A stretch of DNA of 64,000 bases from Basidiobolus meristosporus CBS 931.73 (lineage: Eukaryota > Fungi > Basidiobolomycota). Shown in pieces: positions 21,090 through 64,000 of the stretch (position 1 is the stretch's first letter; each line of letters starts with the position of its first letter). Position numbers and translations under genes: made by a program. The stretch spans positions 62,001 to 126,000 of the forward strand of contig MCFE01000202.1 of assembly GCA_002104905.1 (NCBI GenBank), read 5' to 3'. The notes under the pieces were generated by a model. That model made no database searches. It was not told the origin of the DNA and worked only from the letters and a program-made list of their open reading frames with translations.

Positions 21090-22817
21090 ATGATGGTTGC
21101 ATTCACCTCACCACATCGATCCTCGAGATCAGGCACTCTGTTGTGTCTCTTGCTCGCCTTGATTTTAACGGTCAATGCTGGTGTGGTCGAATACAACCTT
21201 ACCATCACCCAAGATCTACGCTCCCCTGACTGCTTCGAAAGACTAGTCGTCCTGGTGAACAACCAGCTTCCAGGCCCCGAAATCCGCGCTCGTCCTGGCG
21301 ATACACTCGTTGTCAATGTGCTCAACCAGATGGATACGGATGTGGTCTCGATGCATTTCCATGGGCTCCACAACAAAGGCACGCCGTACTCGGATGGTGT
21401 CCCTCGTCTGACCCAATGGCCCATCCTCCCAGGAACCATGTATCGCTACGAGATGAACGTGGGCGACCAGGTGGGCACCTATTTCTACCACGCCTCTACC
21501 AGTATCCACGGAATGACCGCATTCGGACCCCTCGTGATCGACGACAACCTGGGCCCCAGACTGTTCAAGTATGATGAGGAGCGTAACTTCCTTCTGAGTG
21601 ATTTCTTCCACAAGGATGATGACACCATCACCACTGGATTGCTATCACCCAACTTCCACTGGATCTTCGCCCCACAGTCGATGCTCATCAACGGTAAGAA
21701 CCTTGTCGAAACCAAGTGCACATCCAAGGATGACAAGGTCTGCACGTCCTGCCAACACGACGTCACTACTGTGGAGAGGGGAAAGACCTATCGCTTCCGC
21801 ATCTACGGCTCCGCCATGGCCGCATTCTTCCGGTTCAAGATCGCTGGTCACAAGTTGACTGTTATCGAGGTTGATGGCTCCTATGTGCAGCCCTATGTCA
21901 CCGATCATATCGAGGTGAACGCTGGTCAACGCTTCTCAGTCCTAGTCACTGCTGATCAAAGCCCCGGAACCTACTATATCAAATCCGAGCCAGGATACGA
22001 ATGGAAGGTCCCACCTGCTGCTGCAGGCACCCAAGCAGATGGTGTGGCCATCTTACAGTATAAGGAAGCCAAGCAGCCCGATCCTAGAGAGGTCCCAAGC
22101 AAGAACGCACTTCCACAGGTTCCAGAGCAAGAGTTCCTGTGGGAAACTGATAGATTTGTCAAGCTACCATACCCCTCCGACGCTGTGCCCAACTTCCCAA
22201 AACACTTCAACCGCGAGTTCATCCTGACCCCGACTGTAGTATTGCTGGGTGATGGCGGTGGTTTGGTCGGTGTGCCAACTAAGATGGTGATCAACAATGT
22301 CACCTACGAACACCCAAGAACCCCTCTTCTTAATGACCTGTATACTGGACAGATGTCTCGTAGCATCGACTATTCAAGGATCCCGCCCGATGGCTACGAC
22401 CCTAGACGTGGCACTTATCCGATCCAACTCGGGGAAGTGATCCAAGTTGTCCTTCAACTGACCGCTGACCCTAATGGTCGTTGCGACGTGCACCCATTCT
22501 ATCTTCACGGGCACAAGCTGTTTGATCTCGGTGGTGGTAAAGGCGCGTACCCTGGAAAACTCCCAATGCTTAGAAACCCTCCGTTCCCACGTGACATCAT
22601 CACTCTGTACCCTACAGCCGAGAGTCAGGGAATCCATAATGAACCACACTCACCATGCGGCTGGAGAGCATTCCGCTTCATTGCCAACAATCCAGGCACC
22701 TGGCTATTCCAATGTCGCGCCACCCCCCATGCCATCATGGGTATGGCCGCGGTATTTGAGGTCGGAGTGGACAAGCTCCCCCCTCCACCACGTTCTCTTG
22801 GTAAATTAGCATACTAG
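21090..22817 (+). CDS. Secreted three-domain multicopper oxidase (ascorbate oxidase/laccase-like) with degenerate trinuclear site
   Basis: Intronless 575 aa with signal-like hydrophobic N-region; HFHG, FYHAS, HPFYLHG and WLFQCRATPHAIMGM occupy the L1-L4 positions. Confidence 0.92.
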   Translation: MMVAFTSPHRSSRSGTLLCLLLALILTVNAGVVEYNLTITQDLRSPDCFERLVVLVNNQLPGPEIRARPGDTLVVNVLNQMDTDVVSMHFHGLHNKGTPYSDGVPRLTQWPILPGTMYRYEMNVGDQVGTYFYHASTSIHGMTAFGPLVIDDNLGPRLFKYDEERNFLLSDFFHKDDDTITTGLLSPNFHWIFAPQSMLINGKNLVETKCTSKDDKVCTSCQHDVTTVERGKTYRFRIYGSAMAAFFRFKIAGHKLTVIEVDGSYVQPYVTDHIEVNAGQRFSVLVTADQSPGTYYIKSEPGYEWKVPPAAAGTQADGVAILQYKEAKQPDPREVPSKNALPQVPEQEFLWETDRFVKLPYPSDAVPNFPKHFNREFILTPTVVLLGDGGGLVGVPTKMVINNVTYEHPRTPLLNDLYTGQMSRSIDYSRIPPDGYDPRRGTYPIQLGEVIQVVLQLTADPNGRCDVHPFYLHGHKLFDLGGGKGAYPGKLPMLRNPPFPRDIITLYPTAESQGIHNEPHSPCGWRAFRFIANNPGTWLFQCRATPHAIMGMAAVFEVGVDKLPPPPRSLGKLAY

Positions 22818-40799: not shown

Positions 40800-41866
40800 G
40801 GGGGGAGACAGTCACCAAAAGGTGAAGTCTTTATTTCAGTACAAATAAAGAAGCCAGCACTACTGTGGTAGCTTTCTAACAAGAGTGTATAGCTGAAGGG
40901 ATTGTTTGGTAGCTTAATAGGAAGAAATAATAGCCCTTTAGTGCTCAAGACACTGCTCAGCAGCTAGGGGGGTAGCAAGGGGGATAAGAATGATTTGTCA
41001 GCAACATTAATGGATGTAGTCGGGGGGGGGGAGAGATAGTTAGGGGGGAGACATTCTCCAATAGGTGAAATCTTTATTTCAGTTGAAGTAAAGAAGCCAG
41101 TGCTACTGTTGCAGCTTTGATACAAGAGTGTGTAGCTGATAGGAATTTGGAAAGTGTAGTGTAGTGTGTTCTCTTTCAGGCCTTGATCAGTGGGTAGTTG
41201 CAGTGGTGAAGTCTGAGACATAATCTGGTTCTAAGGTAGAGTAGTCTGATCATATAGGGCATAAACCCAAAAGCACCAAGAATAGCATGTCTGTAGGGGC
41301 ATTCAGGCAGATGAGGCACCAGGGATGTAATGCACCAGACTGCAAGCTTGTTGAGCTTAGTGCAGTCTCTAGAGGTAAGAGAGAGAAGTGGTAAGCCAAA
41401 TTCCAGTAAAGGGAAGACAAACTGCTTGAGTAGAAGGAGGCAGCTGGGAGCTGAAGTTGTAGGAGGAGTAACAGCCAGTAGCTTGTGGAGTGCCTGTCTT
41501 GCCAGGATGATTCTCTTCTTCAGGTGTGCTCCAGAGTCTAGTCCAGTAGGAAGGAAAGGAAAGCCAAGATATGCAGCAGAAACATGAGCAGGTAGTGTGC
41601 AGTTCTCTAAGTTGATAGGACAGCCCAAAGGTACTGTCTTTGCAATGGAAAGCTGGAGATTATTCTTCTGCAGATACTGGTGGATGGTCTGGGAGTTTTG
41701 TTGCACATTGGAGGAGGATATTCTGATGTCATCAGCAAAGAGAGTAACCAGGCAGTCAGCTGAGAGTCTTGGGAAGTCATTCAGGAAGATGGCAAACAGC
41801 ATAGGACCAAGCACAGAGCCTTGAATCACTCCATTAAGAACTGAGAACACTGGTGATTGCTCATTT
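40800..41866 (-). mobile_element. 5'-truncated non-LTR (LINE) retrotransposon
   Basis: ORF 41176-41850: GVIQGSVLGPMLFAIFLND, LFADD, YLG. CpG-free. A ~100-bp block of the 3' region is duplicated (~40800-40900 and ~41043-41140). Confidence 0.85.
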
Positions 41867-41957
41867 ATACTATGATTGCAAAGTAGAATTTATTGGTGTG
41901 GAATGAAATAGTACAAGTGTAGAGGGTTACTTTGGAGATATACATTGTAATACGCAT

Positions 41958-42341
41958 TTAATGGGTGGGGCATTTGGTGCACTTGCAGTTGTCACCACAG
42001 CAGCACTTGCCACTTTGGCCTTCGCACGACTCGCACTTGCAGTCGTCCCCGCAGCAGCACTTGCTCTTCTTGGCCTCGCCGCATTTACAGGCGGAGCCGC
42101 ACTTGCACCCCTCGCCACAGTTGCATCCGGATTGCTTCTTGCCTTGGCAGTTGACGCACTTGCAACCGCCCTTGCACTCGCAGGGTGGCACTTTAATAGT
42201 CTTGGCGCACTTGCACTTCTCGCAGGTGCAGTTGTCCTTGCAAGAGCAGGTGGCCTTCACTTCGACCTTTTGGCATTGGCATTGCTCGCACTGGCAGTTC
42301 TCGCCACAGCAGCAGATCTTGACGGTGTGTTGGGAAGCCAT
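41958..42341 (-). CDS. Long modular metallothionein, copy 1 (127 aa, 36 Cys)
   Basis: MASQHTVKICCCGENCQC...CKCTKCPTH; CCC and CxC motifs, no aromatic residues, intronless. Confidence 0.92.
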   Translation of the reverse strand: MASQHTVKICCCGENCQCEQCQCQKVEVKATCSCKDNCTCEKCKCAKTIKVPPCECKGGCKCVNCQGKKQSGCNCGEGCKCGSACKCGEAKKSKCCCGDDCKCESCEGQSGKCCCGDNCKCTKCPTH

Positions 42342-43522
42342 GTTGAGTAGTTTATTGATGATAGAGTATGCAAATTCCAAGCCAGATTCCAGATTTTTAT
42401 AAATTCATTTTCAAGTCGGAACGACGCATCTCACTATTCCCTCCCAATGGCGTAAATCTCGCTGCACCAAATGTTCTATTCAAAGACTCCACTCTCCGGC
42501 TCAGAAATTACATCACGCGAGATGCCACCCAAATCGTCATCATCAATATCCATTGGTGATTCGCAGCTGACGTTCCCCAGTGGCTAAAATAACGCAAGCG
42601 TTAATTGAAGCAGCTCCTTTAAGCAAATATCTTGGCTTTTCTCTGGTTATGATTGCGCATCAATTGAGGCCATGCCACGAGTAGTGAAAGCGCCTAAGCA
42701 CTCAAGCTACAAGCTGGTTTCAGGTATTGTACATACGGGGAATATCCGATCCATAGTAACCTGACGAGAGCGAACTCCGACGAAATGAATATACGCCCAC
42801 CAATAATTGAGTAATACTCCAAAGCAGTGGAAGTCACTGCGCCATTACCTTATAAATAATAGAGGTACAGAATCACCCAGATCAACTGGATTCTTTTTGA
42901 AGTATAGCGGCGGAGGGGAGAAAGCGGAGTTCGGTGACCCTTTTAACCCCGAACCATCAAGATATTCGCCTGGATTCTGTGATTCTTTAACACTCACCAT
43001 ATCACGATATATGGACTTCAGATACACACTTCACCCACTTGATTCAGAAACGGAATCGTGACAAGAATCATACAATCAAGTAAACGCAAGAGCATGACAA
43101 ATCTTGTAGTGTCGGACCAATGGTTGGTGCATTCCCCAATAGCTAAAATAACGCAAGGGATCAATAAAGCAGCCATTCCAAGCAAGTTGCAACCTGGAGA
43201 GGTATGTAAAGTCGTAAATGTACAATTCAACATTATCACATCACTATTGTCTCAGCATTTTACCGATCTCCTAAGGTATGAATCAACTAAACAGTGAAAT
43301 AATCATCATTGATACATGTGAAGATTCTCGCACTGCGTCCTTCTAGTTTCTGAATGGGATAATGAAGTTAGCGATTCAACGGCGCCTGATGGAGACTAGA
43401 CTAAAAAGTATGCGGAACACCGGAATATTGCACAAGGAGTGATTGTCAAGAGAGATCTATTAGTTGGGAATATCATAGTACAGTGTAAAATGCTAATTTG
43501 AGATATACTTTACGGTGGAAGT

Positions 43523-43756
43523 TTAAAGAGTGAGACACTTAGTACACTTGTAGCTGTCACCATAGTAGCACTCGCCCTTCTGGCCTTCACATGACTCGCA
43601 CTGGCAGTCTCCCCCGCAGCAGCACCTGTACTTCTTGGCCTCGCCGCATTTGCATCCGGATTGTTTCCTACCCTGCCATCTCACGCACTTACAACCATCC
43701 TTGCACTCACAAGGTGGCACTTCCACGGTCTTGGCGCGCTGGTACTTAAACGTCAA
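43523..43756 (-). pseudogene. 5'-truncated metallothionein pseudogene
   Basis: C-terminal half only (VPPCECKDGCKC...), several Cys changed to Tyr/Trp, no start codon; abuts the 3' flank of copy 2. Confidence 0.85.
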
Positions 43757-43847
43757 ACAATATGATTGCGAAGTAGAATTTATTGGTGTGAAATGAAATA
43801 GTACAAGTGTAGATGGCTATTTTGTAGATGTACATTATGATGCCCTT

Positions 43848-44231
43848 CTAATTGGTGGGACATTTGGTGCACTTGCAGTTGTCACCACAGCAGCACTTGC
43901 CACTTTGGCCTTCGCACGACTCACACTTGCAGTCATCACCGCAGCAGCACTTGCTCTTCTTGGCCTCGCCGCATTTACAGGCGGAGCCGCACTTGCACCC
44001 CTCGCCACAGTTGCATCCGGATTGCTTCTTGCCTTGGCAGTTGACGCACTTGCAACCGCCCTTGCACTCACAGGGTGGCACTTTAACAGCCTTGGCGCAC
44101 TTGCACTTCTCGCAGGTGAAGTTGTCCTTGCAAGAGCAGATGGCCTTCACTTCGACCTTTTGACATTGGCATTGCTCGCACTGGCAGTTCTCGCCACAAC
44201 AGCAGATCTTGACGGTTTGTTGGGAAGCCAT
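43848..44231 (-). CDS. Long modular metallothionein, copy 2 (127 aa, 35 Cys)
   Basis: Near-identical to copy 1; one Cys-to-Phe change (DNFTC). Confidence 0.92.
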   Translation of the reverse strand: MASQQTVKICCCGENCQCEQCQCQKVEVKAICSCKDNFTCEKCKCAKAVKVPPCECKGGCKCVNCQGKKQSGCNCGEGCKCGSACKCGEAKKSKCCCGDDCKCESCEGQSGKCCCGDNCKCTKCPTN

Positions 44232-45092
44232 GTTGGAATGTTTAATGATGATAGGATATGCAGGTACCAAGGCCGATTCCTGCTTTTATAAATTCGTTTC
44301 CCAAGCCGGAACGACATATCTCGTCAATCACTCCAATGGCGTAAATCTCGCCATACCGAATATTCTATGCAAGCACTACATTTGACATCACGTGACATCA
44401 CGCACTTATTCTTCATCAACACCAATGGGTGATTGGCAGCCGAGGTTCCCCAATGGCTAAAATAACGCAAGCTTTAAATGAAGCAACCCCTTTGGGCACA
44501 TATCGTGGCTATTCTCTGATTTTGGTTACGCAGTCAGTGAGACTATGCCGTGGGTAGTCGAGTCACGTTTAAAGCACCGGTACACTCAACTTACAAACTG
44601 GTTCGAGATTCAAGGAATATTTTGAGAAGAATGGGCTTGAACGAAATGAATGTGCATCCACCGATAGTTGAATAACTCCCCATGGTTAACTCAGGAACAG
44701 AGCGAGTCACTGTGCCGTTTCTTTATTACTAATAGAGTTGTAGCGTTACCTTACTTAATCAGATTCTTTTGAATTATTGCGGCGGAGGAAAGGAAGCCAA
44801 GTAGATTAAACCTAGTGCTCTAGATATTCGCCTGGATTCTCTGGTATTTGAGCACACAACCACGTCACGAAATATGGACTACATACGTGGGAAATTTCGC
44901 ATCAAAACTCACGTGACGCAGAAACACACTAGCGGTTGGTAGTTCAATCAAGCCTGAAAAATAAAACTACAGAATATAGTAAACACAAGCATATGCCAAA
45001 TTTTGTAGTTGTCGAGTAAGATTTATTGATTCGGAATTTAATAGTACAAATGCAGAAAAGTTTGTATTGGAGATATACACTATGATGCGCAC

Positions 45093-45440
45093 TTAATGGG
45101 CGGGACACTTGGTGCATTTGCAGTTATCATCACAGCAGCACTTGCCACTTTGACTTTCACACGTCAAACACTTGCAGTTGTCCTCACAGCAACATCTGCT
45201 CTTCTTGACCTCGCCGCATTTGCATCCGGATGGCTTATTCCCCTGGCAGTTGACGCACTCACAACCACCCTTGCACTCGCAGGGTGGTACTTCAACAGTC
45301 TTGGTACACTTGCACTTCTCGCAGGTGCAGTTGTCTTTGCAAGAGCAGGTGGCCTTCACTTCGGCCTTTTGGCATTGGCATTGCTCGCACTGGCAGTTCT
45401 CGCCACAGCAGCAGATCTTGACGGTTTGTTGGGAGGCCAT
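45093..45440 (-). CDS. Metallothionein, copy 3 (115 aa, 32 Cys)
   Basis: Intact ORF with an in-frame 12-aa deletion (CNCGEGCKCGSA equivalent) in module 4. Confidence 0.88.
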   Translation of the reverse strand: MASQQTVKICCCGENCQCEQCQCQKAEVKATCSCKDNCTCEKCKCTKTVEVPPCECKGGCECVNCQGNKPSGCKCGEVKKSRCCCEDNCKCLTCESQSGKCCCDDNCKCTKCPAH

Positions 45441-46042
45441 GTCGCGGTGTTTATTCAGAATAGAGTATGCATGTACCAAGGCCGATTCCTGCTTTTTATA
45501 TGCTTTCACTTGCTCACCCGCACCAATGGATCACCCATGCTGACCAATGGCGTATATCGCGCCTCCGATCAAGGCCGGTCCAATCGCTCTCCTCTACTCC
45601 GAGAAATTCGTCACATGATAGCATCGGCGTTGATTTTTCGTCATGTTCAATCCACGATTAGTAAGTGATCATTCCCAACGGCAAAAATCACGCATTGGAT
45701 CGACGAAGCATCTCCTTTAGGCAAATCTCTGGACTTTTCCATAGTAACCCAATGGACGCGGCTTTACTGCGAGTGGTAGATGGACGTTTAATGCATACCA
45801 AAAGTTAGGTTACAAGCAGGTATGATGCAACGGTCAGATAGGGAGTTATTGTCTTTGAGGAATATAGCATGTTTGGCCTGCTATGGCCCCAAGAAGATCA
45901 ATTGGACTGTTGATGAGTTTATGAGAGATTTACGCCATTAGAGGATGCTGTGAGATGTGTTGTTCCAGCTGGGAGGGTGATTGTATAAAAAGCAGGATTC
46001 GGTCTTGATGCGTGCATACTCAGTTCTTTACAAACTATTAAA

Positions 46043-46160
46043 TATGGCTTCCCAAAAAAAACAGTCAGGAATTGTTGGTGTGACGAACGTTTCCAATGTT
46101 CAAAGGTGCGGGTGGAGGCGAAGGCCAGAGCAACCAGTGCATTAAGTGCGCTGCCCACAA
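46043..46160 (+). pseudogene. Inverted, heavily deleted metallothionein remnant
   Basis: ATGGCTTCCCAA start, MT-type 5' UTR/TATA (ATAAAAAGCAGGATTCGG) and upstream GAGATTTACGCCATT motif; frameshifts and a large deletion. Coordinates approximate. Confidence 0.65.
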
Positions 46161-46625
46161 ATATTAGAAAAGCCTAACCCTGCATACACTCCCATCATAT
46201 CTTGTAAATTTTCTCGAACTATAATATAAAGGTATAATAAGTTGGCTACAAATCTACCCTTTGCCCCTTCTTTCCCTACACTATCAACGGTTCCCACTAT
46301 TTCTCGCTTGTAGATCTTAGTCACAGAACCTTGAGTTCATCATATTCTGTACAACATTCAGAGGAAATCTCTCCTTCATGCCCAATGCACTGCAGAAGAA
46401 TGTCGGATTGTAGATTATGGAAAACTTCACATTGCTTATCACACGTTTCCTCAATGAACTCCGAAATAAGTGATTTTCACCAATCCAAGTGGAGACCCAA
46501 CCTACAGGAATAAAGAATAAACCGATAACGCCATAACGATGATAGTCCAGCGGAATTGATTTATTTGGAATTCCAAAGCACAAGCTTGGAAGATATCTTA
46601 TGGAGATATACCGCACGGTGAGTGA

Positions 46626-46971
46626 TTAATAGGTGGGACACTTGGCGCACTCGCAAATGCTGCTACAACAGCAGGTACCGCTATGGCTTTCGCACAACTC
46701 ACAATCGCGGTCGCTCCCGCAACAACACTTATTCTTCTTGATCTCGTCGCATTTGCAGCTGGATTGCTTTCCCCTAGCAGTTGATGCACTTGCAACCGTC
46801 CTTGCACTCGCAAGGTGGTGCCTCCGCAGTTCTGGCGCACTCACATTTCTCGCAGGTGCAGTTATCTTTACAAGGGCATGTGACTTTCACTTCGACCCTT
46901 TGGCATTGGCATTGTTCGCATTGACAATTGTTGCCACAACAACGGATCATGGCGGTTTGTTGGGAAGTCAT
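46626..46971 (-). pseudogene. Metallothionein pseudogene (nonsense + frameshift)
   Basis: MTSQQTAMIRCCGNNCQC.. stops at TAG (46774); the remaining modules continue in another frame to ..CAKCPTY*. Confidence 0.85.
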
Positions 46972-47812
46972 GTTGGAATGTTTAGTGGTGACAGAGTATG
47001 CAGGTGTCAAGGCCGATTCCTGCTTTTTATAAATTCATTTTCAAGTTAGAACGACGCATCTCGCTATTTCCTCCAATGGCGTAATTCTCGCCATGCTTTA
47101 TGATCAATCCAATCATCCGTGTCGCCTCCTCTTAGTGACAGACGCGGTTCTTCACGAATAATTCTCCACAATGCTACAAACTGATGATATGTGAATCTCC
47201 CCCAATAGCTAAAATAACGCAACGGATGAATCCCTAAGCTTATCGAGGGTTACACAGTATACGAGGCTTCGAATAGTAGAATCATGTTTGATCCGCATCG
47301 AAAGTAAAGCCAAAAGCCGGATCCAGAACATGATCGGAGAAGCGTGTGAAGTAGTGCCTAGAGTGGAAGCCAGCCGATCTGTGATGTACATTTCTGGGAG
47401 GTGGTTTGATTCGACACCTAATCACCTTTTTGAATCATTGCGTAACCTGAAGAGTTTGACTTCGCAGGGTGTGTTGAGTACAACCGGCATGTGTTGGCAG
47501 CTTCATTCGTAAGGAAAGTCCGATGAGTTGCATATAGATCATATCGCATTCCAGTCACCACACAGGATTCATTCGAAATTAGTGAAAGTATATTTACCAC
47601 TATCGCCCATTTGGTTTTCGGGTCATCTAGTTCCGTAGGAATCGACACAAAGCGTACTGGCGCGGAGGTAACCAGGCTGGTTAAGTGGTACGGTATGATT
47701 TACGCTATTAGGAGGTATGGGTGATCCGTTGGTCCGGAGTGGAAAGTGAATTTATAAATAGCAGGAATCGGCCTTGGCACCTGCATACTCTAACACCATT
47801 AAACATTCCAAC

Positions 47813-48117
47813 ATGGCTTCCCGACAAATCGTCAAGATCTACTGCTGTGGCGAGAACTGCCAGTGCGAGCAGTGCCAATGTCATAGGTCGAAGTGAAGGC
47901 CGCCTGTTCTTACACTGATGACTGCACCTGCAAGAAGTGCGAGTGCGCCAAGGCCGTTGAAGTGCCACTCTGCGAGTGCAAGGGCGGTTGCAAGTGCGTC
48001 AACTGCCAAGGCAAGAAGCAATCCGGATGCAACTGTGGCGAGGGGTGCAAGTGCGGCTCCGCCTGTAAATGCGGCGAGGCCAAGAAGAACAAGTGCACCA
48101 AGCGCCCTACTCACTAA
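47813..48117 (+). pseudogene. Inverted metallothionein pseudogene (frameshift + C-terminal module deletion)
   Basis: ATGGCTTCCCGACAA start; 1-nt deletion near 47883 causes an early TGA; downstream frame encodes modules 2-4 joined to TKRPTH. Confidence 0.85.
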
Positions 48118-48544
48118 TTCATTAGAAAGACTTAACCCTCATTACTTCCGCCATTGTACCTTGTAAATTTCCTCGGAAGTATTTGTCATAACAAATTAGT
48201 TCCGAACCTGCTCTTTGCCATTGAAGCCCTATTATTATTGGAATTTTCTTCTACGCCTCAGTTACCGAACCTTGTCCCCTTTACTTCCTGGTAGCAGATA
48301 ATATGTTCAGTCATAGTGCATTAAACCGACACAATATGTATGAAACGCATCGTTTTGTATGTCACTTGATTCAAAATCAATTCATAATCGAACAACTCGA
48401 TGGAACATGAAAAAGCCAAACACTCTGGCCTAGCGAACACAGGAAAACGTCAAATACTATGATTGCGAAGTAGAATTTATTGGTGTGGAATGAAATAGTA
48501 CAAGTGTAGAGGGTTACTTTGGAGATATACATTGTAATGCGCAT

Positions 48545-48928
48545 TTAATGGGTGGGGCATTTGGTGCACTTGCAGTTGTCACCACAGCAGCACTTGCCAC
48601 TTTGGCCTTCGCACGACTCGCACTTGCAGTCGTCCCCGCAGCAGCACTTACTCTTCTTGGCCTCGCCGCATTTACAGGCGGAGCCGCACTTGCACCCCTC
48701 GCCACAGTTGCATCCAGGTTGCTTCTTGCCTTGGCAGTTGACGCACTTGCAACCGCCCTTGCACTCGCAGGGTGGCACTTTAATAGTTTTGTCGCACTCG
48801 CACTTCTCGCAGGTGCAGTTGTCCTTGCAAGAGCAGGTGGCCTTCACTTCGGCCTTTTGGCATTGGCATTGCTCGCACTGGCAGTTCTCGCCACAGCAGC
48901 AGATCTTGACGGTTTGTTGGGAAGCCAT
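48545..48928 (-). CDS. Long modular metallothionein, copy 4 (127 aa, 36 Cys)
   Basis: Intact; near-identical to copies 1 and 2. Confidence 0.92.
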   Translation of the reverse strand: MASQQTVKICCCGENCQCEQCQCQKAEVKATCSCKDNCTCEKCECDKTIKVPPCECKGGCKCVNCQGKKQPGCNCGEGCKCGSACKCGEAKKSKCCCGDDCKCESCEGQSGKCCCGDNCKCTKCPTH

Positions 48929-50633
48929 ATTGGAATGTTTAATGATGATAGAGTATGCAGGTACCAAGGCCGATTCCTGCTTTTTATACATTCACTATCC
49001 AAGCCGGAACAACGCATCTCGCCAATTCCTCCAATGGCGTAAATCTCGCCGTACCTTATGATCAATCCAATCACTCATCTTCACTTTCTCAACCGGACCG
49101 ATCTTTCTTACTGTATCCACCAATGCCTCGTGATCGGTCCAATTGTCCATCACTTCCTCACGTGAATTGTGCCACTTTCATTTATCATCACCTATGGACG
49201 ATTGGTAGGCCGTTGCAATAGCTAAAATCACGCATGCGAATGATGGTGCAGCTCCTTTAAGCAGCTCTCTTGGCCTTCTCTATGGTTACACAGTAGATTA
49301 TGGGCTATCTGTAATATAGGGAACTCCTGTCTAGGAAAAGTATATGAAAATCTGCTAGTAACGAGCGCCAGCCTGACTATTTCTTGAATGCGGCTCCTTT
49401 TGACACTCGACCCAGTAGTTTTGAAAAATGCGTAACTAGGCGAAATTGTTTGCGTGGAACCCAATCGTCTGAGCACATTCACTATGAAAGCAACTCCCGA
49501 CAACAATGACTTGAACATATTTCATCCAGTGTGGTGAACATTGCCCACACTATTTTCCCTTCAAACGAGGATTCGCGTTACTCCTGAACAACCCATAAAT
49601 CCCGAGTATTAAACACAGTTGTTGAAATTTTTGATTTTTAAAAGTATTGTTGAGTTCTCAGGTCAGCAATCGACCCAACCCGGGTTGCAATCCGGGTGAG
49701 CCTGGGTGGTATTAATCATTAGTGAGTAATGATCCCCAATTACATCATAAAGAAAACTATATGTTATTTATAAAATAACAGGTAAAAGTTTCCTACTGAG
49801 AATTGAAGTGTCACGAAGACGCCTGGGTCGTATTTAAAGTCAACCAGACCGCTGTTGATATTGTGGGATACGTAGCAGGGGGGGGGGAATTGTTGAGAAC
49901 TCCTAACCAGACCTATCCATTGGCTGACTGGCTGAAAAAAATCACGTTCCCTGCGGGTAGATTTAAGAAAATGAGGAAAAAAAAAGATAGCTCTATCGGG
50001 ATGATTTTCGTACAGTTCGTAAACGGAAGCCGTCACTAAACAACAATCTCTTGGGAATCTGGTGGGGGTTAGCGATAGATTGGTTTCTGAATAATGACCA
50101 AATATCCTGCAGGATTGACATCAGTTGATATTTCTCCGATGTGAATGATCGGCACGAGATACTAGGCCTATTTGACTCTGTAAAATTGTATTGTATTCCG
50201 ATGCGTCAAATATCCGAAAGGGGCCTGTCTTTATTGCAAGTTACTTCTTCATCAATTTAAACCTTTGTCATAGATACTAAGTACGCACAGGTCAGGTCTC
50301 AGACTATTTTAACATTGTTATGTTACGTACTTAAAGAGTAATGTCCTTTAGAGAGTACGAAAAGGGATAACGTGTATGTTATCTTGTGTAAGAATATCTC
50401 TTTAAAAGGTTAGGGTGGTGACTTTGTAGAAATATATTCAAGCTAATATTCGTTCCTACTACGCTCTTCTGCCTATAACCAAAAACTCCCTTTTTATTTA
50501 GTTGCTTGTTTAGTATTTATACCTTATTGTGAGTCTGGTGATTTGTCTTTGATTTGCTTCTCCCTGGCTACTAAGTCGTCTTTGTATGCGTTGATGTCAC
50601 TTAACATCGAGTGACTCTTTACTCAGTAACAGT

Positions 50634-52943: not shown

Positions 52944-53837
52944 TTATTGCCCACGTGCAATAGTAGCGGTAATGTAGCCAGAGGGGTCGCTAATGGGTTG
53001 GAAAATGTTCATGTCCTTGCCTTCGTTGGGAAGGTTGAAGGGTTTCAGGTTGATACTGAGGTAGTGCTTGTTCGGGAGTGCATAGCTGATCTCGCGAACA
53101 TCCACATTCTGAACCAACACCTTCTCACCCATCTGGTACATGGTGGCTTGCACCGAGGCGGAGTCGTCAGTGGCAAAGGTGCTGAGGGTGATCTCACGAA
53201 CACTGTTGGCAATCTCGTCGAATGGAATCTCTTCGATCTTGGACTTCTCGAGGTTGTAGGTCCACTTGGCATCGACACTAGTGGAGAAGATTCGGTCAGT
53301 GGCGTCTTGAAGGGTAGTGTACTCGCAGCGGTGGAAGTTGGTGAAGGCAGAACCAGTGGACTTCAACACAAGGAGATCCTTGAGGCGAGACTCAATGGAC
53401 ACCTTTCCATCCCGAGAGACTGTCATCTCGACACGTCTAGTCTCATCGCCATCACGGAGGAAGGAGTGAGGGTGGAGTTGGCCATCGATCTCAACACGGG
53501 TCCAGCGGTGTTGGATGAGCTTGATGAAGACATCATCGACGTGGGAGTATCTGTTGATGAAGTGTTGGCCAATCTCGTAACCAAAGCGCTCGATGGTCTG
53601 GACATTCTCAGACTTCTTGGCAAGGACGTAGAGGGTGTTCTTGACAGTGTCAGTTGGGACAACAACAGAGTTGTCAGCCTCGGTGTAGGAGGTCTCGAAC
53701 TTGCCATCGAGGAGGACTTGAGCAGTGAGCTCGACAACATCATGCCAGTTCTTGGTGTGGCGGATGACCTTGGTGATGCGAACCTTGGTCTTGCCGTAGG
53801 CTTGCTTCTTTAGGTAGGCATTGGAGGTGTTGGCCAT
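52944..53837 (-). CDS. UOX: Uricase (urate oxidase), paralog A, 297 aa
   Basis: YGK, ADNSVVVPTDTVKNT, LKSTGSAF, DRIFST, SVQATMY, LPNKHY; ends IARGQ. Confidence 0.96.
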   Translation of the reverse strand: MANTSNAYLKKQAYGKTKVRITKVIRHTKNWHDVVELTAQVLLDGKFETSYTEADNSVVVPTDTVKNTLYVLAKKSENVQTIERFGYEIGQHFINRYSHVDDVFIKLIQHRWTRVEIDGQLHPHSFLRDGDETRRVEMTVSRDGKVSIESRLKDLLVLKSTGSAFTNFHRCEYTTLQDATDRIFSTSVDAKWTYNLEKSKIEEIPFDEIANSVREITLSTFATDDSASVQATMYQMGEKVLVQNVDVREISYALPNKHYLSINLKPFNLPNEGKDMNIFQPISDPSGYITATIARGQ

Positions 53838-54318: not shown

Positions 54319-55209
54319 ATGTCCGGAGCAGCTGAGCTGAAGCGTCAAGCCTATGGCAAGGCCAAGGTCAGAGTCACCAAGGCTATCCGTCACACCGCCC
54401 AATATAACGACATTGTCGAGCTCACCTGCCAAGTGCTCCTTGAGGGTGACTTCAAAGAGGCCTACACCAAGGCTGACAACAGCATGGTTGTCCCCACTGA
54501 CACCATCAAGAACACTTGCTACGTTATTGCCAAGAAGTCCGACCACGTCCAGACCATCGAGCGCTATGCTTACGAGCTTGGCAAGCACTTTGTTGACAAG
54601 TACTCCCACGTCACCCATGCCAGTGTCCACATTGTCCAACAACGTTGGGCCAGAATCAATGTCAATGGTGAGCCGCATCCTCACTCCTTCTACCGTGATG
54701 GCAGTGAGACCAGAGAGACCTGGGTTACTGTTGCTGCTGACAGAGTGAGCATCAAATCGGGATTGGAAGGGCTGCTTGTGTTGAAGACCACCGGCTCCTC
54801 CTTCACCAACTTCCATCTCTGCGAGAACACCACCCTTCAGGATGCCGATGACCGAATCTTCTCCACCACTGTCAAGGCCCACTACAACATCGACACCTCA
54901 ATCGGTGTCGAGAACGTTCCATTTGACCGCATCTTTGAAGGAGTGCGCAAGACCACCCTGGATGTGTTCGCTCACGATGACTCTGCCTCCGTTCAGGCCA
55001 CCATGTACCGTATGGCCGAGTTAATCTTGAGGCGGTTCCCTGAAGTCCAGGATGTGTACTACGCACTGCCCAACAGCCACCACTTTACTACCAACCTTGC
55101 CCCCTTCAATCTACCCAATGCTGGCCAGGAGATGACGATTTTCTCGCCAGTGACTGACTTCTCTGGATACATCACTGCCACCATTGGTCGTTGTGGTAAC
55201 AAATTTTAA
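54319..55209 (+). CDS. UOX: Uricase (urate oxidase), paralog B, 296 aa
   Basis: YGK, ADNSMVVPTDTIKNT, LKTTGSSF, DRIFST, SVQATMY, LPNSHH; ends CGNKF. Confidence 0.96.
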   Translation: MSGAAELKRQAYGKAKVRVTKAIRHTAQYNDIVELTCQVLLEGDFKEAYTKADNSMVVPTDTIKNTCYVIAKKSDHVQTIERYAYELGKHFVDKYSHVTHASVHIVQQRWARINVNGEPHPHSFYRDGSETRETWVTVAADRVSIKSGLEGLLVLKTTGSSFTNFHLCENTTLQDADDRIFSTTVKAHYNIDTSIGVENVPFDRIFEGVRKTTLDVFAHDDSASVQATMYRMAELILRRFPEVQDVYYALPNSHHFTTNLAPFNLPNAGQEMTIFSPVTDFSGYITATIGRCGNKF

Positions 55210-56110: not shown

Positions 56111-56644
56111 ATGTCCATCATAAAATCCCTACTGTTGTTCAGCGTTGCGATTGCTCTTACTCACAATCCTGTTGCTAGTCAGGAAGTTGAAGATGGTAGC
56201 ACAGCTGTTGCCAGTCAGGGGACTACTGATGGTGGAGCCGCGGTGCCGGGTCCTGAAGTCATTCGCCTGGAAAAGCGGTACGGTGGTGGCCCCGCTCTCT
56301 TCAGTTCTCATAGCATTGCCGGAAGTGTACCCGTAATTCAAGGCAGTCCTCTAAATCTGGGAAACAGTAGCAAAGGAAAGAAACACGGACGCGGGCACGG
56401 GCACGGAACTGCTGGAAAACGAGGTCCACGTGGGAGACGTGGAAGACAGGGGAAGCGGGGGAGACAAGGAAAGCGAGGAAGACCTGGTAGGCCAGGCAGA
56501 CCAGGTAAATCCGAGATCTATGTTGTAAATCCAGAACCTCCAACAACTCCAGCCCCTGAACCAAAACCTTATTCTGATGATGTTCCCCCAGTCACAAACT
56601 CTCATACGGATGATAGTGCCCCTCCAGCTGAGCCAAATTACTAG
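56111..56644 (+). CDS. Secreted protein with a short cationic collagen-like (Gly-X-Y)12 segment
   Basis: Signal peptide, LEKR site, 12 Gly-X-Y triplets (56405-56512), Pro/acidic tail. Confidence 0.75.
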   Translation: MSIIKSLLLFSVAIALTHNPVASQEVEDGSTAVASQGTTDGGAAVPGPEVIRLEKRYGGGPALFSSHSIAGSVPVIQGSPLNLGNSSKGKKHGRGHGHGTAGKRGPRGRRGRQGKRGRQGKRGRPGRPGRPGKSEIYVVNPEPPTTPAPEPKPYSDDVPPVTNSHTDDSAPPAEPNY

Positions 56645-57479
56645 TTGCTGGAATAATAAAGAACTGAGGGATTGATGGAAATACACTATAATTGTTATGA
56701 ACAGCACATCTATTCAATAACATAATCATTTGCCACGATGGCAAAGGTGTTGTTTATCTAGAACATTTCCGAATTGAATTCTCTTTCTCAATGCCACACA
56801 ATAAGACTTGACATGCATCAATGAACAGGCATTGAGTTGCGGTTGAAAGTGTTTGTCTCAGCTCATTGCATCAGGATACTTTGCCTATACGTACCTGACT
56901 AGTGATGATACCCGTAGAGGTGGTTCTGGAATCATCGGAGCTAGCATGCATTAATAATGGAAATGAAACGGTTCTGGATACGGAATGGAGGTAATGGTTA
57001 GGATGTTGCTGATTCCGTCAGTGGTTTAAGTGGTCAAGAGCTTGTGCAGAAGCGCTGGCCCGTACAATTTTTGGACTACATTATAAAATCATCTATACAT
57101 ACAAATAAAATCCAGTTCCGATTCAGTTCAGATCCTGGACAGCCAGCAATATACACGTAAAATATTTTGCCCTGCTTATCAAGTGGGGGGTAAACCATAT
57201 AATGGCAAATAAGGCGTTGTTTACTCAATTCACAAGGCAGGGGGTGAACTACCAATCGCCATTTTTGGCTAAATTTGGGTTGATTCTGATAGTTAACACA
57301 CTGAACTGTATCTTGGCTTAATGAGACAGAGCAGGAAAAGGAAAGGGGCACTTGTTTACATACGGGATACCCCATGTTTCGCTGGCCCATAAAGGGAAAG
57401 CTGTAGGTTGGTATAAATGGAGGCTCTATTGAGATATATCAAGGCATCCACTAAGTGCTATATCTCTTTTTAAAATAGA

Positions 57480-58918
57480 ATGAAATTCTCCGCTCTTAGA
57501 ATCTTGTGCTTCCTCTCTGGTTTGGCAGCAATCAACGCTGCAGCTTTCGATCGGAGATTGCAAGCTAGAAGCGGTGGGGCCTATGATGTGACGGATGTAT
57601 TTGGTGGAGGTAATGGCGGAAATGGCGATTCTAACGGCAATGGTGGTAATGGTAAAGGAGGAAACGGAGCTGGTACCTATGGTTCTGGAAATGGCGACAA
57701 CGGAAACAGCGGTAACGGCAACGGAGGTAATGAAGGGAACGGAGCTGGCGCCTATGACTCTGGAAATGGTGGTAATGGCAACGGTAATAGAGGTAATGGA
57801 GATGGTAATGGTAGTAATGGCAACGGAGGAAATGGAGCTGGCACCTACGATTCTGGAAACAGTAATGGAGACAACGGTGGTGGCAATGGTGGCAATGGTA
57901 ATGGAGGAAAGGGAGCTGGCGCCTACGATTTTGGAAACGGCGGTAATAGTAATGGTAACGGTAACGGAGGCAATGGCAATGGAGGAAATGGAGATGGTAA
58001 CGGTAATGCCGGCAGCGGAGCTGGTGGCTATGGCTCCGGAAGCGAAGGTAATGGCAACGGCAATGACAATGGAGGAAACGGAGCCGGCGCCCATGACTCT
58101 GGAAACGGTGGCAATGGAAGCAATGGGGCTGGTGCTTATGACTTTGGAAACAGTGACAATAATAACGGTAACGGAGGCAACGGTGGTGGCATGGCAATGG
58201 CAATGGCGATGGAGGTAATCAAGCTGGAGCCTATCACTCTGGAAACGGTGGTAATGACAACGATAACGGAGGCAATGGTAATGGTAATGGCAATGGAGAA
58301 AATGGAGCTGGTGCCTACGATTCTGGAAGCGGCGGTAATGGAGGCAATGGAGATAGTAATGGCAATGGCGGCAACGGAACCGGTACCTATGATACTGGAG
58401 ACGGTGGTAACAATGGAAATGGCAACGGTGGTGGCAATGGCAATGGAGAAAATGGGGCTGGTGCCTACGATTCTGGAAACGGCGATGATGGTAACGGTAA
58501 CGGTAACGGAGGCAATGGCAATGGCAATGGTGGAAATGGAGATAATAAGGGCAATGGCGGCAATAGAGCTGGTGCCTATGATACTGGAAACGGTGGCGGC
58601 AATGGAAATGGCAACGGTAACGGAGGCAACGGAGGCGGCAATGGTAATGGAGGAAATGGAGCTGGCGCCTACGATTCTGGAAACCATGGTAACGGTAACG
58701 GTAACGGTAGTGAAGGCAATAGCAATGGAGGAAATGGAGATAGTAACGGCAATGGCGGCAATGGAGCTGGTGCTTATGATACTGGAAGCGGTGGCGGGAA
58801 TGTAAATGGCAATGGTAACGGAGGCAATGGTGGTGGCAATGACAATGGAGGAAATGGAGCTGGTACTTATGATTCTGGAAACGGAGGTAATGGGAATGGT
58901 AACGACGATTGCCAGTAA
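57480..58918 (+). CDS. Secreted Gly/Asn-rich GAGAYDSG-repeat protein, copy 1 (1-nt frameshift at ~58191)
   Basis: Same N-terminus as copy 2; repeats continue in another frame after GGC-ATG-GCA and end DDCQ* at 58918; the span of 1439 nt is one base short of 480 codons. Confidence 0.75.
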
Positions 58919-59813
58919 TTATAGAGTCATATAATCTAAAATTTGCTTTTATATATAAATTCCATAAATAAAATCGAATATAGCTGATACTCACGACCCG
59001 AAGTAATACAGTGACAAAAAGTGTGGAAAAACCCTCACTAACCACTCAGGATACAAGAAAGCAGTAAATTCCTATCTAAAAGCTGTGTGTTGATCTATGG
59101 ATCCAATAGTCATTTTCCAAGTTCAGTCGAAGACACTTTGATTTTTTGGATTATTTCCATTCTCGAATCCCTACCCAAGTAGAGAGTAATGTTCCAGAAT
59201 AATGAGGTTGTCTTTGTAAAATGGTTGGACTATGCACTCAAACTAGAGCTAAATACTGCAATGAGTTGTGTATTTACTCACCTTTCTTAAAACATTCTTG
59301 CGCTATACGGTGATTACTCTACATATCAGAGTTTAGCAAAGAGTTGCTTGTCGTTTTGGTGAGAGTAATTCCCACTTCTACAATAACATCACTATATAAA
59401 TAAATCCTTCCTAAACAGTTGTCCATAGTTGCAGTATGTCAACATATTCTATTCGATTGGTGCGAATACCGAAATGTTATCGAGATCCTAACTCCCGATT
59501 CTCCAGAATAGCCAGTGAAACCTCGCTTACTTGATATGATGCAACTCACCAGCCACGGGGTAGAGGAAGTTAAGGTAAATGTGGGGAAGAAGGTTTCGTT
59601 TACTCAATTCACCAGGCAGGGGGTGGACTCCTTACGATACTTAACTCATTGAAATGTACCTTGGCTTGCTGAGACATAACTAGAAAAAGAAAGGGGCGTC
59701 AGTGTGCATATTCTTTCTGTCCAAAAGGCTAATGCTGTAAATTGGTATAAATAGAAGCTCTAGTGAGATATATCAAGGCATCCACTAAGTGCTATATCTC
59801 TTTTTAAAATAGA

Positions 59814-61043
59814 ATGAAATTCTCCGCTCTTAGAATCTTGTGCTTCCTCTCTGGTTTGGCAGCAATCAACGCTGCAGCCTTCGATCGGAGATTGCAAGCT
59901 AGAAGCGGTGGGGCCTATGATGTGACGGATGTATTTGATGGTGGAAATGGTGGAAATGGCGATTCTAACGGCAATGGTGGTGATGGTAATGGAGGAAACG
60001 GAGCTGGTGCCTATGGCTCTGGAAATGGCGGCAACGGAAACCAAGGCGGTGGAAATGGTGGTAACGGTGCTGGTGCTTACGACTCTGGCAATGATGGCAA
60101 TGAAAACGGCGGTAATGGCAACGGCGGTAACGGTGCTGGTGCTTATGACTCTGGGAACGGCAATGGTGGTAATGGAGGAAACGGAAATGGCGGCAACAGA
60201 AACGGCGGTAATGGAGATAGCAATGGAAATGGAGGTACCGGAGCCGGTGCTTATGACTCTGGCAGTGGAGGTAGTAATGGAAACGGCGGTAACGGTAACG
60301 GTAACGAAGGTAATCGAGATGATAATAGCGGTAACGGAAACGGTGCTGGCGCTTACGACTCTGGAAACGGCAACAGTGATAATGGAAGTGGAGGCCATGA
60401 AGACGGCAATGGAAACGGTGGAAACGGGATCGGTGGTAATGGAAACGGAGGTAACGGAGCCGGCGCCTATGACTCTGGAAATGGAGACAAAGGAGATGAA
60501 AATAGCGGCAGTAACAACGGTGGCAACGGGAATGGAGGGAACGGAGCTGGTATTTATGACTCTGGAAATGGAGGAAGCGGAAACGGCAGTAACGACAACG
60601 GAGTCAATGGAAATGGTAATGGAAACGATGGCAACGAAGCCAGTGCCTATGGCCCTGGAAATGGTGGAAACGAAAACGGCGGTAACGGCAACGGAGGTAA
60701 TGGGGATGGTAATGGTAATGGTGCTGGCCCTTTTGACTCTGGTAATGGTGATAGCGGGGAAGGTAGCATTGGCAATAGAGATAGTAATAGCGGTAATGGA
60801 AACGGTAGCAACGGTGCTGGCGCTTACGACTCCGGAAACGGCAACGCTGGTAACAAAAACGGAGGCAATGATGATGGCAATGAAACTGGTGGAAATGGAA
60901 CAGGTGCTTATGACTCTGGAAACGGAAACGGTGGTAACGGCAACGGGGGTAATGGAGATGGCAGTGGAAACGGTGCTAGTGCTAATGACTCGGGAAACAA
61001 TGGTGGTAATGGCACCGGGAATGGTAATGACAATTGTCAGTAA
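59814..61043 (+). CDS. Secreted Gly/Asn-rich GAGAYDSG-repeat protein, copy 2 (409 aa)
   Basis: Signal peptide MKFSALRILCFLSGLAAINA; about 12 G(A/T)G(A/I/P)(Y/F)DSG-type units separated by NG-rich spacers; ends DNCQ. Confidence 0.85.
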   Translation: MKFSALRILCFLSGLAAINAAAFDRRLQARSGGAYDVTDVFDGGNGGNGDSNGNGGDGNGGNGAGAYGSGNGGNGNQGGGNGGNGAGAYDSGNDGNENGGNGNGGNGAGAYDSGNGNGGNGGNGNGGNRNGGNGDSNGNGGTGAGAYDSGSGGSNGNGGNGNGNEGNRDDNSGNGNGAGAYDSGNGNSDNGSGGHEDGNGNGGNGIGGNGNGGNGAGAYDSGNGDKGDENSGSNNGGNGNGGNGAGIYDSGNGGSGNGSNDNGVNGNGNGNDGNEASAYGPGNGGNENGGNGNGGNGDGNGNGAGPFDSGNGDSGEGSIGNRDSNSGNGNGSNGAGAYDSGNGNAGNKNGGNDDGNETGGNGTGAYDSGNGNGGNGNGGNGDGSGNGASANDSGNNGGNGTGNGNDNCQ

Positions 61044-61145
61044 CACATGGAGTTATGGTAGAATGATAATGTATTTATAATCTATATCACCCATAAATAA
61101 CATTGCTTAATCGATATCACTTCTCTATTTATAATATAAATGTCT

Positions 61146-63400: not shown

Positions 63401-64000
63401 AAGTGTGCTGTTATCTGCAGTACTTGAAATGGACTAACACATGTTGAAACAAGTATAAATAGGTAATCTGGTGGATGTAATCAATATAACTGCTTAATAG
63501 CATTTCTAGTATCAAGTTTTAGATGTCACTTGGCTAATGTTGATCTTACTAGTGAGATATTTATTGCATATTGTTGTGCATCAACATTTAAAACTTGGCC
63601 AATTTCACTACGTTAGAAAATCTAGTATCCTAACTGATTTTCCCTAACCCAAACATAACTAATCCCTGTTATGGTTTATTTTATCACTTCTCAGAATCTA
63701 TTTTTTGCTGTCACACCTGATCAATTTTTGTGTGGTCATTACATCCTCAACTGATCTGCTAAGCCTTTCCAAGTGATTAGTTATCTGAGATTTCTCCAAC
63801 TACTTAGCAGTTGCCAAGACATCAGCCAATTAATGATGCAATTTTTCACTTATCTTATGCACCTATCAACACCCCAACAGATTTGAATTAGTCCAGTCTC
63901 TTGGCACTTACTAATGCTACTCAATCAGAAAAGTATAAATAAAGTTTACTGAACCTTTTGGTTTAGTGTGTGTCTCAACAAAATTAAAATTGTGCCTCAG

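Follow-up and report, generated by a model that had tools for sequence, protein, structure and literature searches.

A 64,000-nucleotide (nt) stretch of the genome of the fungus Basidiobolus meristosporus CBS 931.73 (contig MCFE01000202.1, positions 62,001-126,000) harbours an array of eight copies of one gene unit within ~7 kb. The whole 64-kb stretch is referred to here as the window, all positions are those of the window, and the gene copies are termed c1 to c8. The array probably encodes a Basidiobolus-specific family of long modular metallothioneins, cytosolic proteins that would fold around metal-thiolate clusters. At the sequence level the products carry the marks of metallothioneins: a Cys content within the roughly 15-35% of the class, few aromatic residues or His, and CxC, CxxC and CC motifs that are conserved among the copies. 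Their length of 115-127 amino acids lies at the long end of the class, which agrees with a preliminary description of this DNA that had called them unusually long for fungal metallothioneins.

Of the 127 residues of the c1 protein, 36 are Cys (28%), 21 Lys and 13 Gly; Phe, Tyr and Trp do not occur. The c8 protein likewise has 36 Cys in 127 residues, and c4 has 32 Cys in 115. Aromatic residues are absent from c1, c4 and c8, and the single Phe in c3 stems from a Cys-to-Phe change; His varies from none to two. The thiols are arranged in six modules of the form CxCx3CxCx2C(xC), joined by linkers of 6-8 residues and holding 5-7 thiols each (one 7-Cys, four 6-Cys and one 5-Cys module). Modules 1, 5 and 6 begin with CCC, and nine of the 36 Cys lie in CCC runs. 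Several CKCxxC motifs are also present, and 12 of the 21 Lys are adjacent to Cys. No Cys column varies among c1, c4 and c8. The N-terminus, MASQ, is not a signal peptide. An AlphaFold2 model has a mean predicted local distance difference test (pLDDT) score of 35 and no confident fold. Such a lack of an autonomous fold is as expected of an apo-thionein; it would be compatible with metal clusters but proves nothing.

How is the array built? With c1 as query, tblastn over the whole window finds eight loci, all within 41.9-49.0 kb, and no further c1-like locus outside that interval. Of the eight, six lie on the minus strand and two are inverted. A six-frame list of open reading frames for 41-50.5 kb contains four open copies, every one beginning MASQ. 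c1 (41961-42341, minus strand; 41958..42341 with the stop codon) is intact, with the full set of six modules. c8 (48548-48928, minus; 48545..48928 with stop) is also intact and is the copy closest to c1, at 97.9% identity in the coding sequence. c4 (45096-45440, minus; 45093..45440 with stop) is intact in the 115-amino-acid form, which is without 12 codons of module 4. c3 (43851-44231, minus; 43848..44231 with stop) is open over 127 amino acids and has two lesions, the Cys-to-Phe change at codon 38 and a C-terminal His-to-Asn change.

The remaining four copies are decayed. c2 (43523-43747, minus) is a pseudogene of the 115-amino-acid type, i.e. with the 12-codon gap; it is 5'-truncated at codon 42, and six of the Cys at surviving positions have become Tyr, Arg or Trp. 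c6 (46626-46971, minus) is a pseudogene of the same type in which codon 66 reads TAG, 2 bp are missing at codon 68 and two Cys have become Arg. The inverted c5 (46044-46183, plus strand; 45925..46183 with promoter and 5' untranslated homology) is a relic made up of the promoter and ~50 codons from 46044, with many frameshifts. The inverted c7 (47813-48117, plus) is a pseudogene of the 127-amino-acid type that has lost 1 bp at codon 24 and has Tyr in place of two Cys. Modules 5-6 of c7 are gone, in a deletion bounded by two AAGTGC repeats, and the C-terminal TK(R)PTH and stop codon are kept. A solo distal upstream element with no coding sequence attached (43137-43198, minus) represents a ninth relic of the unit. 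The preliminary description had pictured this array as eight copies, four intact (127, 127, 115 and 127 amino acids) and four decayed, and the tblastn search and the reading-frame list agree with it; the same six minus-strand and two inverted orientations are found. It had also spoken of duplicated untranslated and promoter blocks, and the promoter, 5' untranslated and 3' untranslated blocks have indeed been copied along with the genes. The fragment of a long interspersed nuclear element (LINE) that it placed at the border is a 5'-truncated reverse-transcriptase reading frame directly downstream of c1 (41176-41850, minus), which matches Pfam RVT_1 at E=3.2e-10.

The genes are compact and intronless, with coding sequences of 115-127 codons. 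TATAAA is present 60 nt upstream of the ATG in every copy that keeps its 5' end (77 nt in c5), and AATAAA is found ~60 nt past the stop codon. The transcript is predicted to begin ~30 nt before the ATG and to end ~90 nt past the stop codon. MASQ is taken as the start because an upstream in-frame ATG in c8 falls within the TATA box. The c1 promoter block (42342..42700, minus) exemplifies those of all units, with TATAAA at -60, GCCATTGG at -107 (42444-42451) and a ~60-nt distal element at 42578-42639. The sequence GCCATTGG is a CCAAT-type box (CCAAT on the opposite strand) and is situated at about -107 in all minus-strand copies having a promoter; in most copies a second such box lies inside the conserved distal element. 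In the c3 block (44232..44560, minus) the boxes are at 44333-44340 and 44450-44457, and CACGTG is found at -163. The c4 block (45441..45740, minus) has the box at 45544-45551 and the distal element at 45676-45737, and the c8 block (48929..49280, minus) has them at 49031-49038 and 49216-49277, respectively. The window contains ten GCCATTGG sequences versus 2.9 expected, and six of the ten are in array promoters (42444-49038). At the other end of the gene, the c1 3' untranslated block with AATAAA occupies 41867..41957 (minus), and homology with the c3 and c8 units stops ~94 nt after the stop codon.

Searches for relatives give little. Pfam (E<=1) yields only Metallothio_PEC (PF02068), at E=0.02-0.6 and 11-16 bits versus a cut-off of 31.8, and neither NCBIfam (E<=10) nor the PDB sequences (E<=10) yield a match. 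The nearest clusters in the ESM Atlas are plant PEC metallothioneins, with a score of 0.82 that is a lead only; shuffled proteins score in this range in one case out of three. A word-index search with the whole protein, together with a profile search of 1.84 billion representatives, finds one relative only, ORX81395.1. This is a 'hypothetical protein K493DRAFT_342388' from B. meristosporus CBS 931.73, 109 amino acids long and 73% identical to c1, in which several Cys are replaced by Phe, Tyr or Ser and module 4 is scrambled. It lies on a public contig of 43,707 bp, a length also recorded for the contig with a uricase nearly identical to that of the window, and is at most 73% identical to any copy in the window. 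That contig would appear to carry the locus, with a different array content, as an allele, as a paralogous segment or in the version of another isolate; a public contig with a copy absent from the window hints at between-assembly variation. The first two modules alone, used as a word-index query aimed at short metallothioneins, return nothing, and a metagenome scan with protein alignment finds no relative. The exact c1, c3, c4 and c8 proteins, like every other naive reading-frame translation tried from this DNA, are absent from a collection of 15 billion proteins, and c1 is present letter for letter in the ESM Atlas. With none of the four exact sequences in that collection, the earlier suggestion that genes of this kind are missed by annotation holds here. 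A search of the literature shows no relevant link between metallothionein and either Basidiobolus or Zoopagomycota.

A degenerate DNA pattern for the motif KCCCGD[DN]CKC leads to two further contigs, neither of which holds a clear relative. In one (APMI01002490.1, 1290-2136, plus strand) a bacterial Cys-rich reading frame of 58 amino acids (…CCCGDDCKC…) immediately follows the gene of an AraC/HTH_18 regulator with a CxxC motif in its N-terminus. Apart from the motif used for the search, the 58-amino-acid product shows no significant similarity to c1; it may represent a bacterial metallothionein-like gene with its own regulator. The other (Ga0315857_102933, 172-1419, minus) has a reading frame of 416 amino acids that is dense in CCCGxxCKCC and CxCGxxCxCC modules and has no Pfam match. 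Its similarity to c1 is local only (E=6e-5 over 33 amino acids) and, if real, would be an extremely long metallothionein-like protein.

Are the open copies functional genes or relics? The ratio of non-synonymous to synonymous substitution rates (dN/dS) between open copies is 0.14-0.35, and among the six frames it is lowest in the Cys frame. Second, as expected, comes an antisense frame that shares the wobble positions of the Cys frame and has a stop codon in c3. An Ala/Leu-rich antisense reading frame as the real gene is thereby rejected, by the dN/dS per frame, the c3 stop codon and the orientation of the TATA and AATAAA signals. Open copies keep all Cys apart from one in c3, and the decayed copies, with Cys changed to Tyr, Arg and Trp, have the look of relaxed constraint. 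The intact copies are under purifying selection in the Cys frame. It could be argued that this is a dying or functionless repeat family in which the open copies are simply the most recent duplicates, their frames preserved by gene conversion and a stop-poor codon composition. In favour of this, half of the eight copies are dead and a Cys is missing from c3, the two antisense frames likewise run open through the genes and the composition readily yields long reading frames, and the sole annotated public relative looks decayed. Such a family is nevertheless quite improbable, as c4 and the other open copies are separated by a dS of ~0.4-0.5 at a dN/dS of 0.14-0.17, which is too much synonymous change for copies 'too young to decay'. 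In addition, c4 keeps all 32 shared Cys codons, whereas pseudogenes at a similar distance have lost 2-6 Cys, and the promoter and poly(A) signals have been retained. Another possibility is that the array, or the number of its copies, is a product of assembly, i.e. a collapsed or over-expanded repeat or merged haplotypes. Repeat units of 1.2-1.9 kb are hard to assemble, and the public contig of the same species appears to have a near-identical uricase yet has a metallothionein-like gene with no more than 73% identity to any copy here, so that the two assemblies or haplotypes would differ at this point; the copy number in the organism rests on one assembly. An artefactual duplication would consist of identical copies, however, and the copies differ by 2-31% in coding sequences and by 20-34% in promoters, with private lesions and unique junctions (the c3 3' untranslated region against c2 codon 42; the LINE fragment after c1). 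An artefact is thus highly improbable, and the divergence of the copies, each with its own lesions and junctions, speaks against the collapse of the array that the preliminary description had entertained.

Several points weigh against the metallothionein assignment itself. There is no significant likeness to any curated metallothionein family or solved structure, although HMMER composition filters penalise proteins of such biased composition and 'no relatives' is weak evidence. The only public relative looks decayed, to judge from its sequence. Selection on dosage is at best intermittent, because half of the copies are dead and c3 is starting to lose Cys. Furthermore, no metal-response motif is conserved across copies when the promoters are scanned for metal-response element (MRE), Ace1/Cup2-type, Mac1-type and Zap1-type sequences; the same scan shows no conserved AP-1-type, heat-shock element (HSE) or stress-response element (STRE) motif. 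As no known metal-response motif is conserved, regulation of the array may go through a CCAAT-binding complex. Could the product be a Cys-rich intracellular protein with a principal function other than sequestering metal? It might be a thiol redox buffer or scavenger of reactive oxygen species, a store of sulfur or cysteine in spores, or a zinc-dependent structural or nucleic-acid-binding protein. Promoters without a recognised metal-response element and the want of homology to any proven metallothionein would fit such roles, and 21 Lys in 127 residues would suit polyanion binding. The regular CxC, CxxC and CCC spacing, with neither an aromatic or hydrophobic core nor a predicted fold, is on the other hand the pattern of metal-thiolate clusters. 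Moreover, known metallothioneins scavenge radicals too, so that this alternative, which we consider unlikely, overlaps with the metallothionein reading rather than replacing it.

How might the metallothioneins of the array work? The product would be a cytosolic, Lys- and Gly-rich chain without a fold of its own that folds around metal-thiolate clusters, one per module or module pair, and these clusters would sequester metal ions. By analogy with metallothioneins whose loading has been measured, 36 thiols could hold ~12 divalent ions (Zn or Cd) at ~3 Cys each or, going by the Cu4 and Cu5 units of the Tremellales proteins described below, roughly 20-24 Cu(I). Gene dosage, with four open copies here, would raise this capacity. 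We infer metal binding and its stoichiometry, expression and induction, metal preference and a benefit of dosage, and likewise metal detoxification and high capacity. A preference for Cu or for Zn/Cd is not readable from the sequence, where CCC and CKCxxC features coexist; it is not predictable because the protein mixes features like those of the Tetrahymena subfamilies 7a and 7b, which are described below. A broader scenario is possible, although we would lean somewhat against it in its entirety. Basidiobolus may have evolved its own metallothionein family, unrelated in sequence to all those described and housed in multi-copy arrays, where conversion preserves coding sequences and unequal exchange alters gene and module number. 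The result would be a metal sink tunable by copy number and module number, in which each chain would take up ~12 divalent ions or at least 20 Cu(I). A fungus that lives by turns in soil and in amphibian and reptile guts would profit from such a sink.

The array has been shaped by more than one process. The preliminary description had proposed birth-and-death, and the coding divergence between copies, from 2% (c1-c8) to 31% (c2-c6), together with the four dead copies, bears this out. The process is not pure, since gene conversion acts beside it: c1, c3 and c8 are 95-98% identical in coding sequence and 70-79% identical in promoters. The outermost copies, c1 and c8, differ at 83 of 279 promoter sites that can be aligned and at only 3 of 67 synonymous sites (Fisher p=2.8e-6). 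Over the final 300 nt, which take in the 3' untranslated region, the two are 98% identical, and the tract of high identity begins near the ATG. Gene conversion between c1 and c8 is thus limited to the coding and 3' region. Retroposition or cDNA-mediated conversion is suggested by the intronless genes, by the end of homology near the predicted poly(A) site and by the adjacent LINE, but is rejected because homology runs upstream of the TATA box and because the c1/c8 tract starts near the ATG and not at the transcription start.

The first four copies alternate between the 127-, 115-, 127- and 115-amino-acid types, with spacings of 1890 bp (c1-c3) and 1570 bp (c2-c4), which suggests duplication of a two-gene unit. 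A breakpoint is visible where the c3 3' untranslated region abuts c2 at codon 42. The tree of the copies is an unresolved star. A single origin of the three copies of the 115-amino-acid type was considered and is not demonstrable, as the tree is unresolved and a deletion between direct repeats may recur. The 36-bp indel that separates the 127- and 115-amino-acid forms is flanked by TG(T/C)GGCGAGG direct repeats. This 12-codon indel and the loss of modules between short repeats in c7 point to changes in module number by slippage or unequal exchange within the gene. The history can be pictured as unequal crossing-over or segmental duplication of a ~1.9-kb unit, probably with one 127- and one 115-amino-acid gene, after which some copies would have inverted and decayed, gene conversion would have kept the coding sequences of c1, c3 and c8 alike, and slippage between short internal repeats would have changed the number of modules.

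The surroundings of the array offer some observations of their own. Two divergent uricase genes lie head to head (52947-53837, minus; 54319-55209, plus), with ~60% mutual identity. The nearer one, 4 kb from the array, is identical at 296 of 297 positions to a B. meristosporus CBS 931.73 uricase. The next-best matches are paralogues in B. meristosporus and in B. ranarum, and the B. meristosporus protein set contains ten or more uricase paralogues, an unusual expansion. A three-domain multicopper oxidase gene is found at 21090-22817 (plus), ~20 kb from the array. There is a weak collagen-like match at 56111-56644, and long overlapping reading frames on both strands (up to 539 amino acids) occur in a region with strong GC skew and no Pfam match (57426-61080). 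The window, up to position 64,000, contains no telomere repeat array.

Why is such an array of interest? The metallothioneins are a polyphyletic class whose evolution is recognised as an open problem. Long modular metallothioneins of fungi are found in the literature searched only from Tremellales, and early-diverging fungi go unmentioned in a 2025 survey on duplication and domain expansion in fungal metallothioneins. A six-module form in another fungal lineage, independent of the first, would be a natural system for the growth and shrinkage of modular metal-binding proteins, where the 12-codon indel and the two-module deletion are module turnover caught in the act. The array could serve equally as a system for the balance of gene conversion and pseudogenisation, and for what sets the preference for Cu or Zn/Cd, as its proteins mix features that go with opposite preferences in ciliates. 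The finding also flags genes missed by automatic annotation of the B. meristosporus genome. It does not reveal a new kind of system.

How does the Basidiobolus family compare with known metallothioneins? Saccharomyces cerevisiae CUP1 is amplified in tandem, and its copy number sets copper tolerance. Here, too, several metallothionein gene copies stand side by side. The CUP1 units, however, are near-identical, head-to-tail and variable between strains, whereas those of Basidiobolus are of considerable age (dS up to 0.5), half of them are dead and some inverted, and only the coding regions are homogenised. The CUP1 protein is unrelated in length and motif. Plant Ec/PEC metallothioneins (PF02068) are the sole family with any match, which is below the cut-off.

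Closer in length are CnMT1 and CnMT2 of Cryptococcus neoformans and TmMT of Tremella mesenterica (122, 183 and 257 amino acids), which are long for fungal metallothioneins, consist of tandem 6-7-Cys units with spacers, have no aromatic residues and either escaped annotation or were annotated wrongly (PMC4755600). In these Tremellales proteins the 7-Cys units hold Cu5 and the 6-Cys units Cu4 (PMC4755600). The Basidiobolus proteins share the length, the tandem Cys units with spacers, the lack of aromatics and the oversight by annotation. The unit differs: CnMT and TmMT follow the Neurospora pattern CXC-X5-CXC-X3-CXC-X2-C, while that of Basidiobolus is CxC-x3-CxC-x2-C(xC), often with a CCC head. 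TmMT has 10 exons and 23% Cys, compared with intronless genes and 28% Cys in Basidiobolus, and the Tremellales genes are single, with measured Cu specificity, while those of Basidiobolus are arrayed. No similarity of CnMT or TmMT to the Basidiobolus protein is found by the word-index search or by the profile search of 1.84 billion representatives. S. cerevisiae Crs5 (family 13; 69 amino acids) has the N-terminus TVKIC.C.GE.C and CxCEKxKC stretches (PMC4755600). By eye, the TVKICCCGENC and CTCEKCKC of Basidiobolus resemble these, which is a lead only, and Crs5 is not among the matches in the profile search at E<=0.001.

The family 7 metallothioneins of Tetrahymena are 96-181 amino acids long and hierarchically modular (PMC1808422). 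CCC clusters, rare among metallothioneins, are found in subfamily 7a (Cd-type), where the majority of Cys lie in CC or CCC, and subfamily 7b (Cu-type) has CKCxxCKC, Lys beside Cys in a strong majority and essentially no CC or CCC (PMC1808422). The Basidiobolus proteins are similar in length and modularity and combine CCC runs, as in 7a, with CKCxxC and Lys near Cys, as in 7b. Their values (9 of 36 Cys in CCC, 12 of 21 Lys by Cys) are intermediate and correspond to neither the 7a nor the 7b diagnosis. The profile search shows no significant sequence similarity to Tetrahymena family 7, which belongs to a different kingdom. The Basidiobolus family is a member of none of these groups: its unit pattern differs, homology is undetectable and its genes are intronless and arrayed. 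In its working it appears to resemble both the amplified CUP1 and the long modular proteins known from Cryptococcus, Tremella and Tetrahymena.

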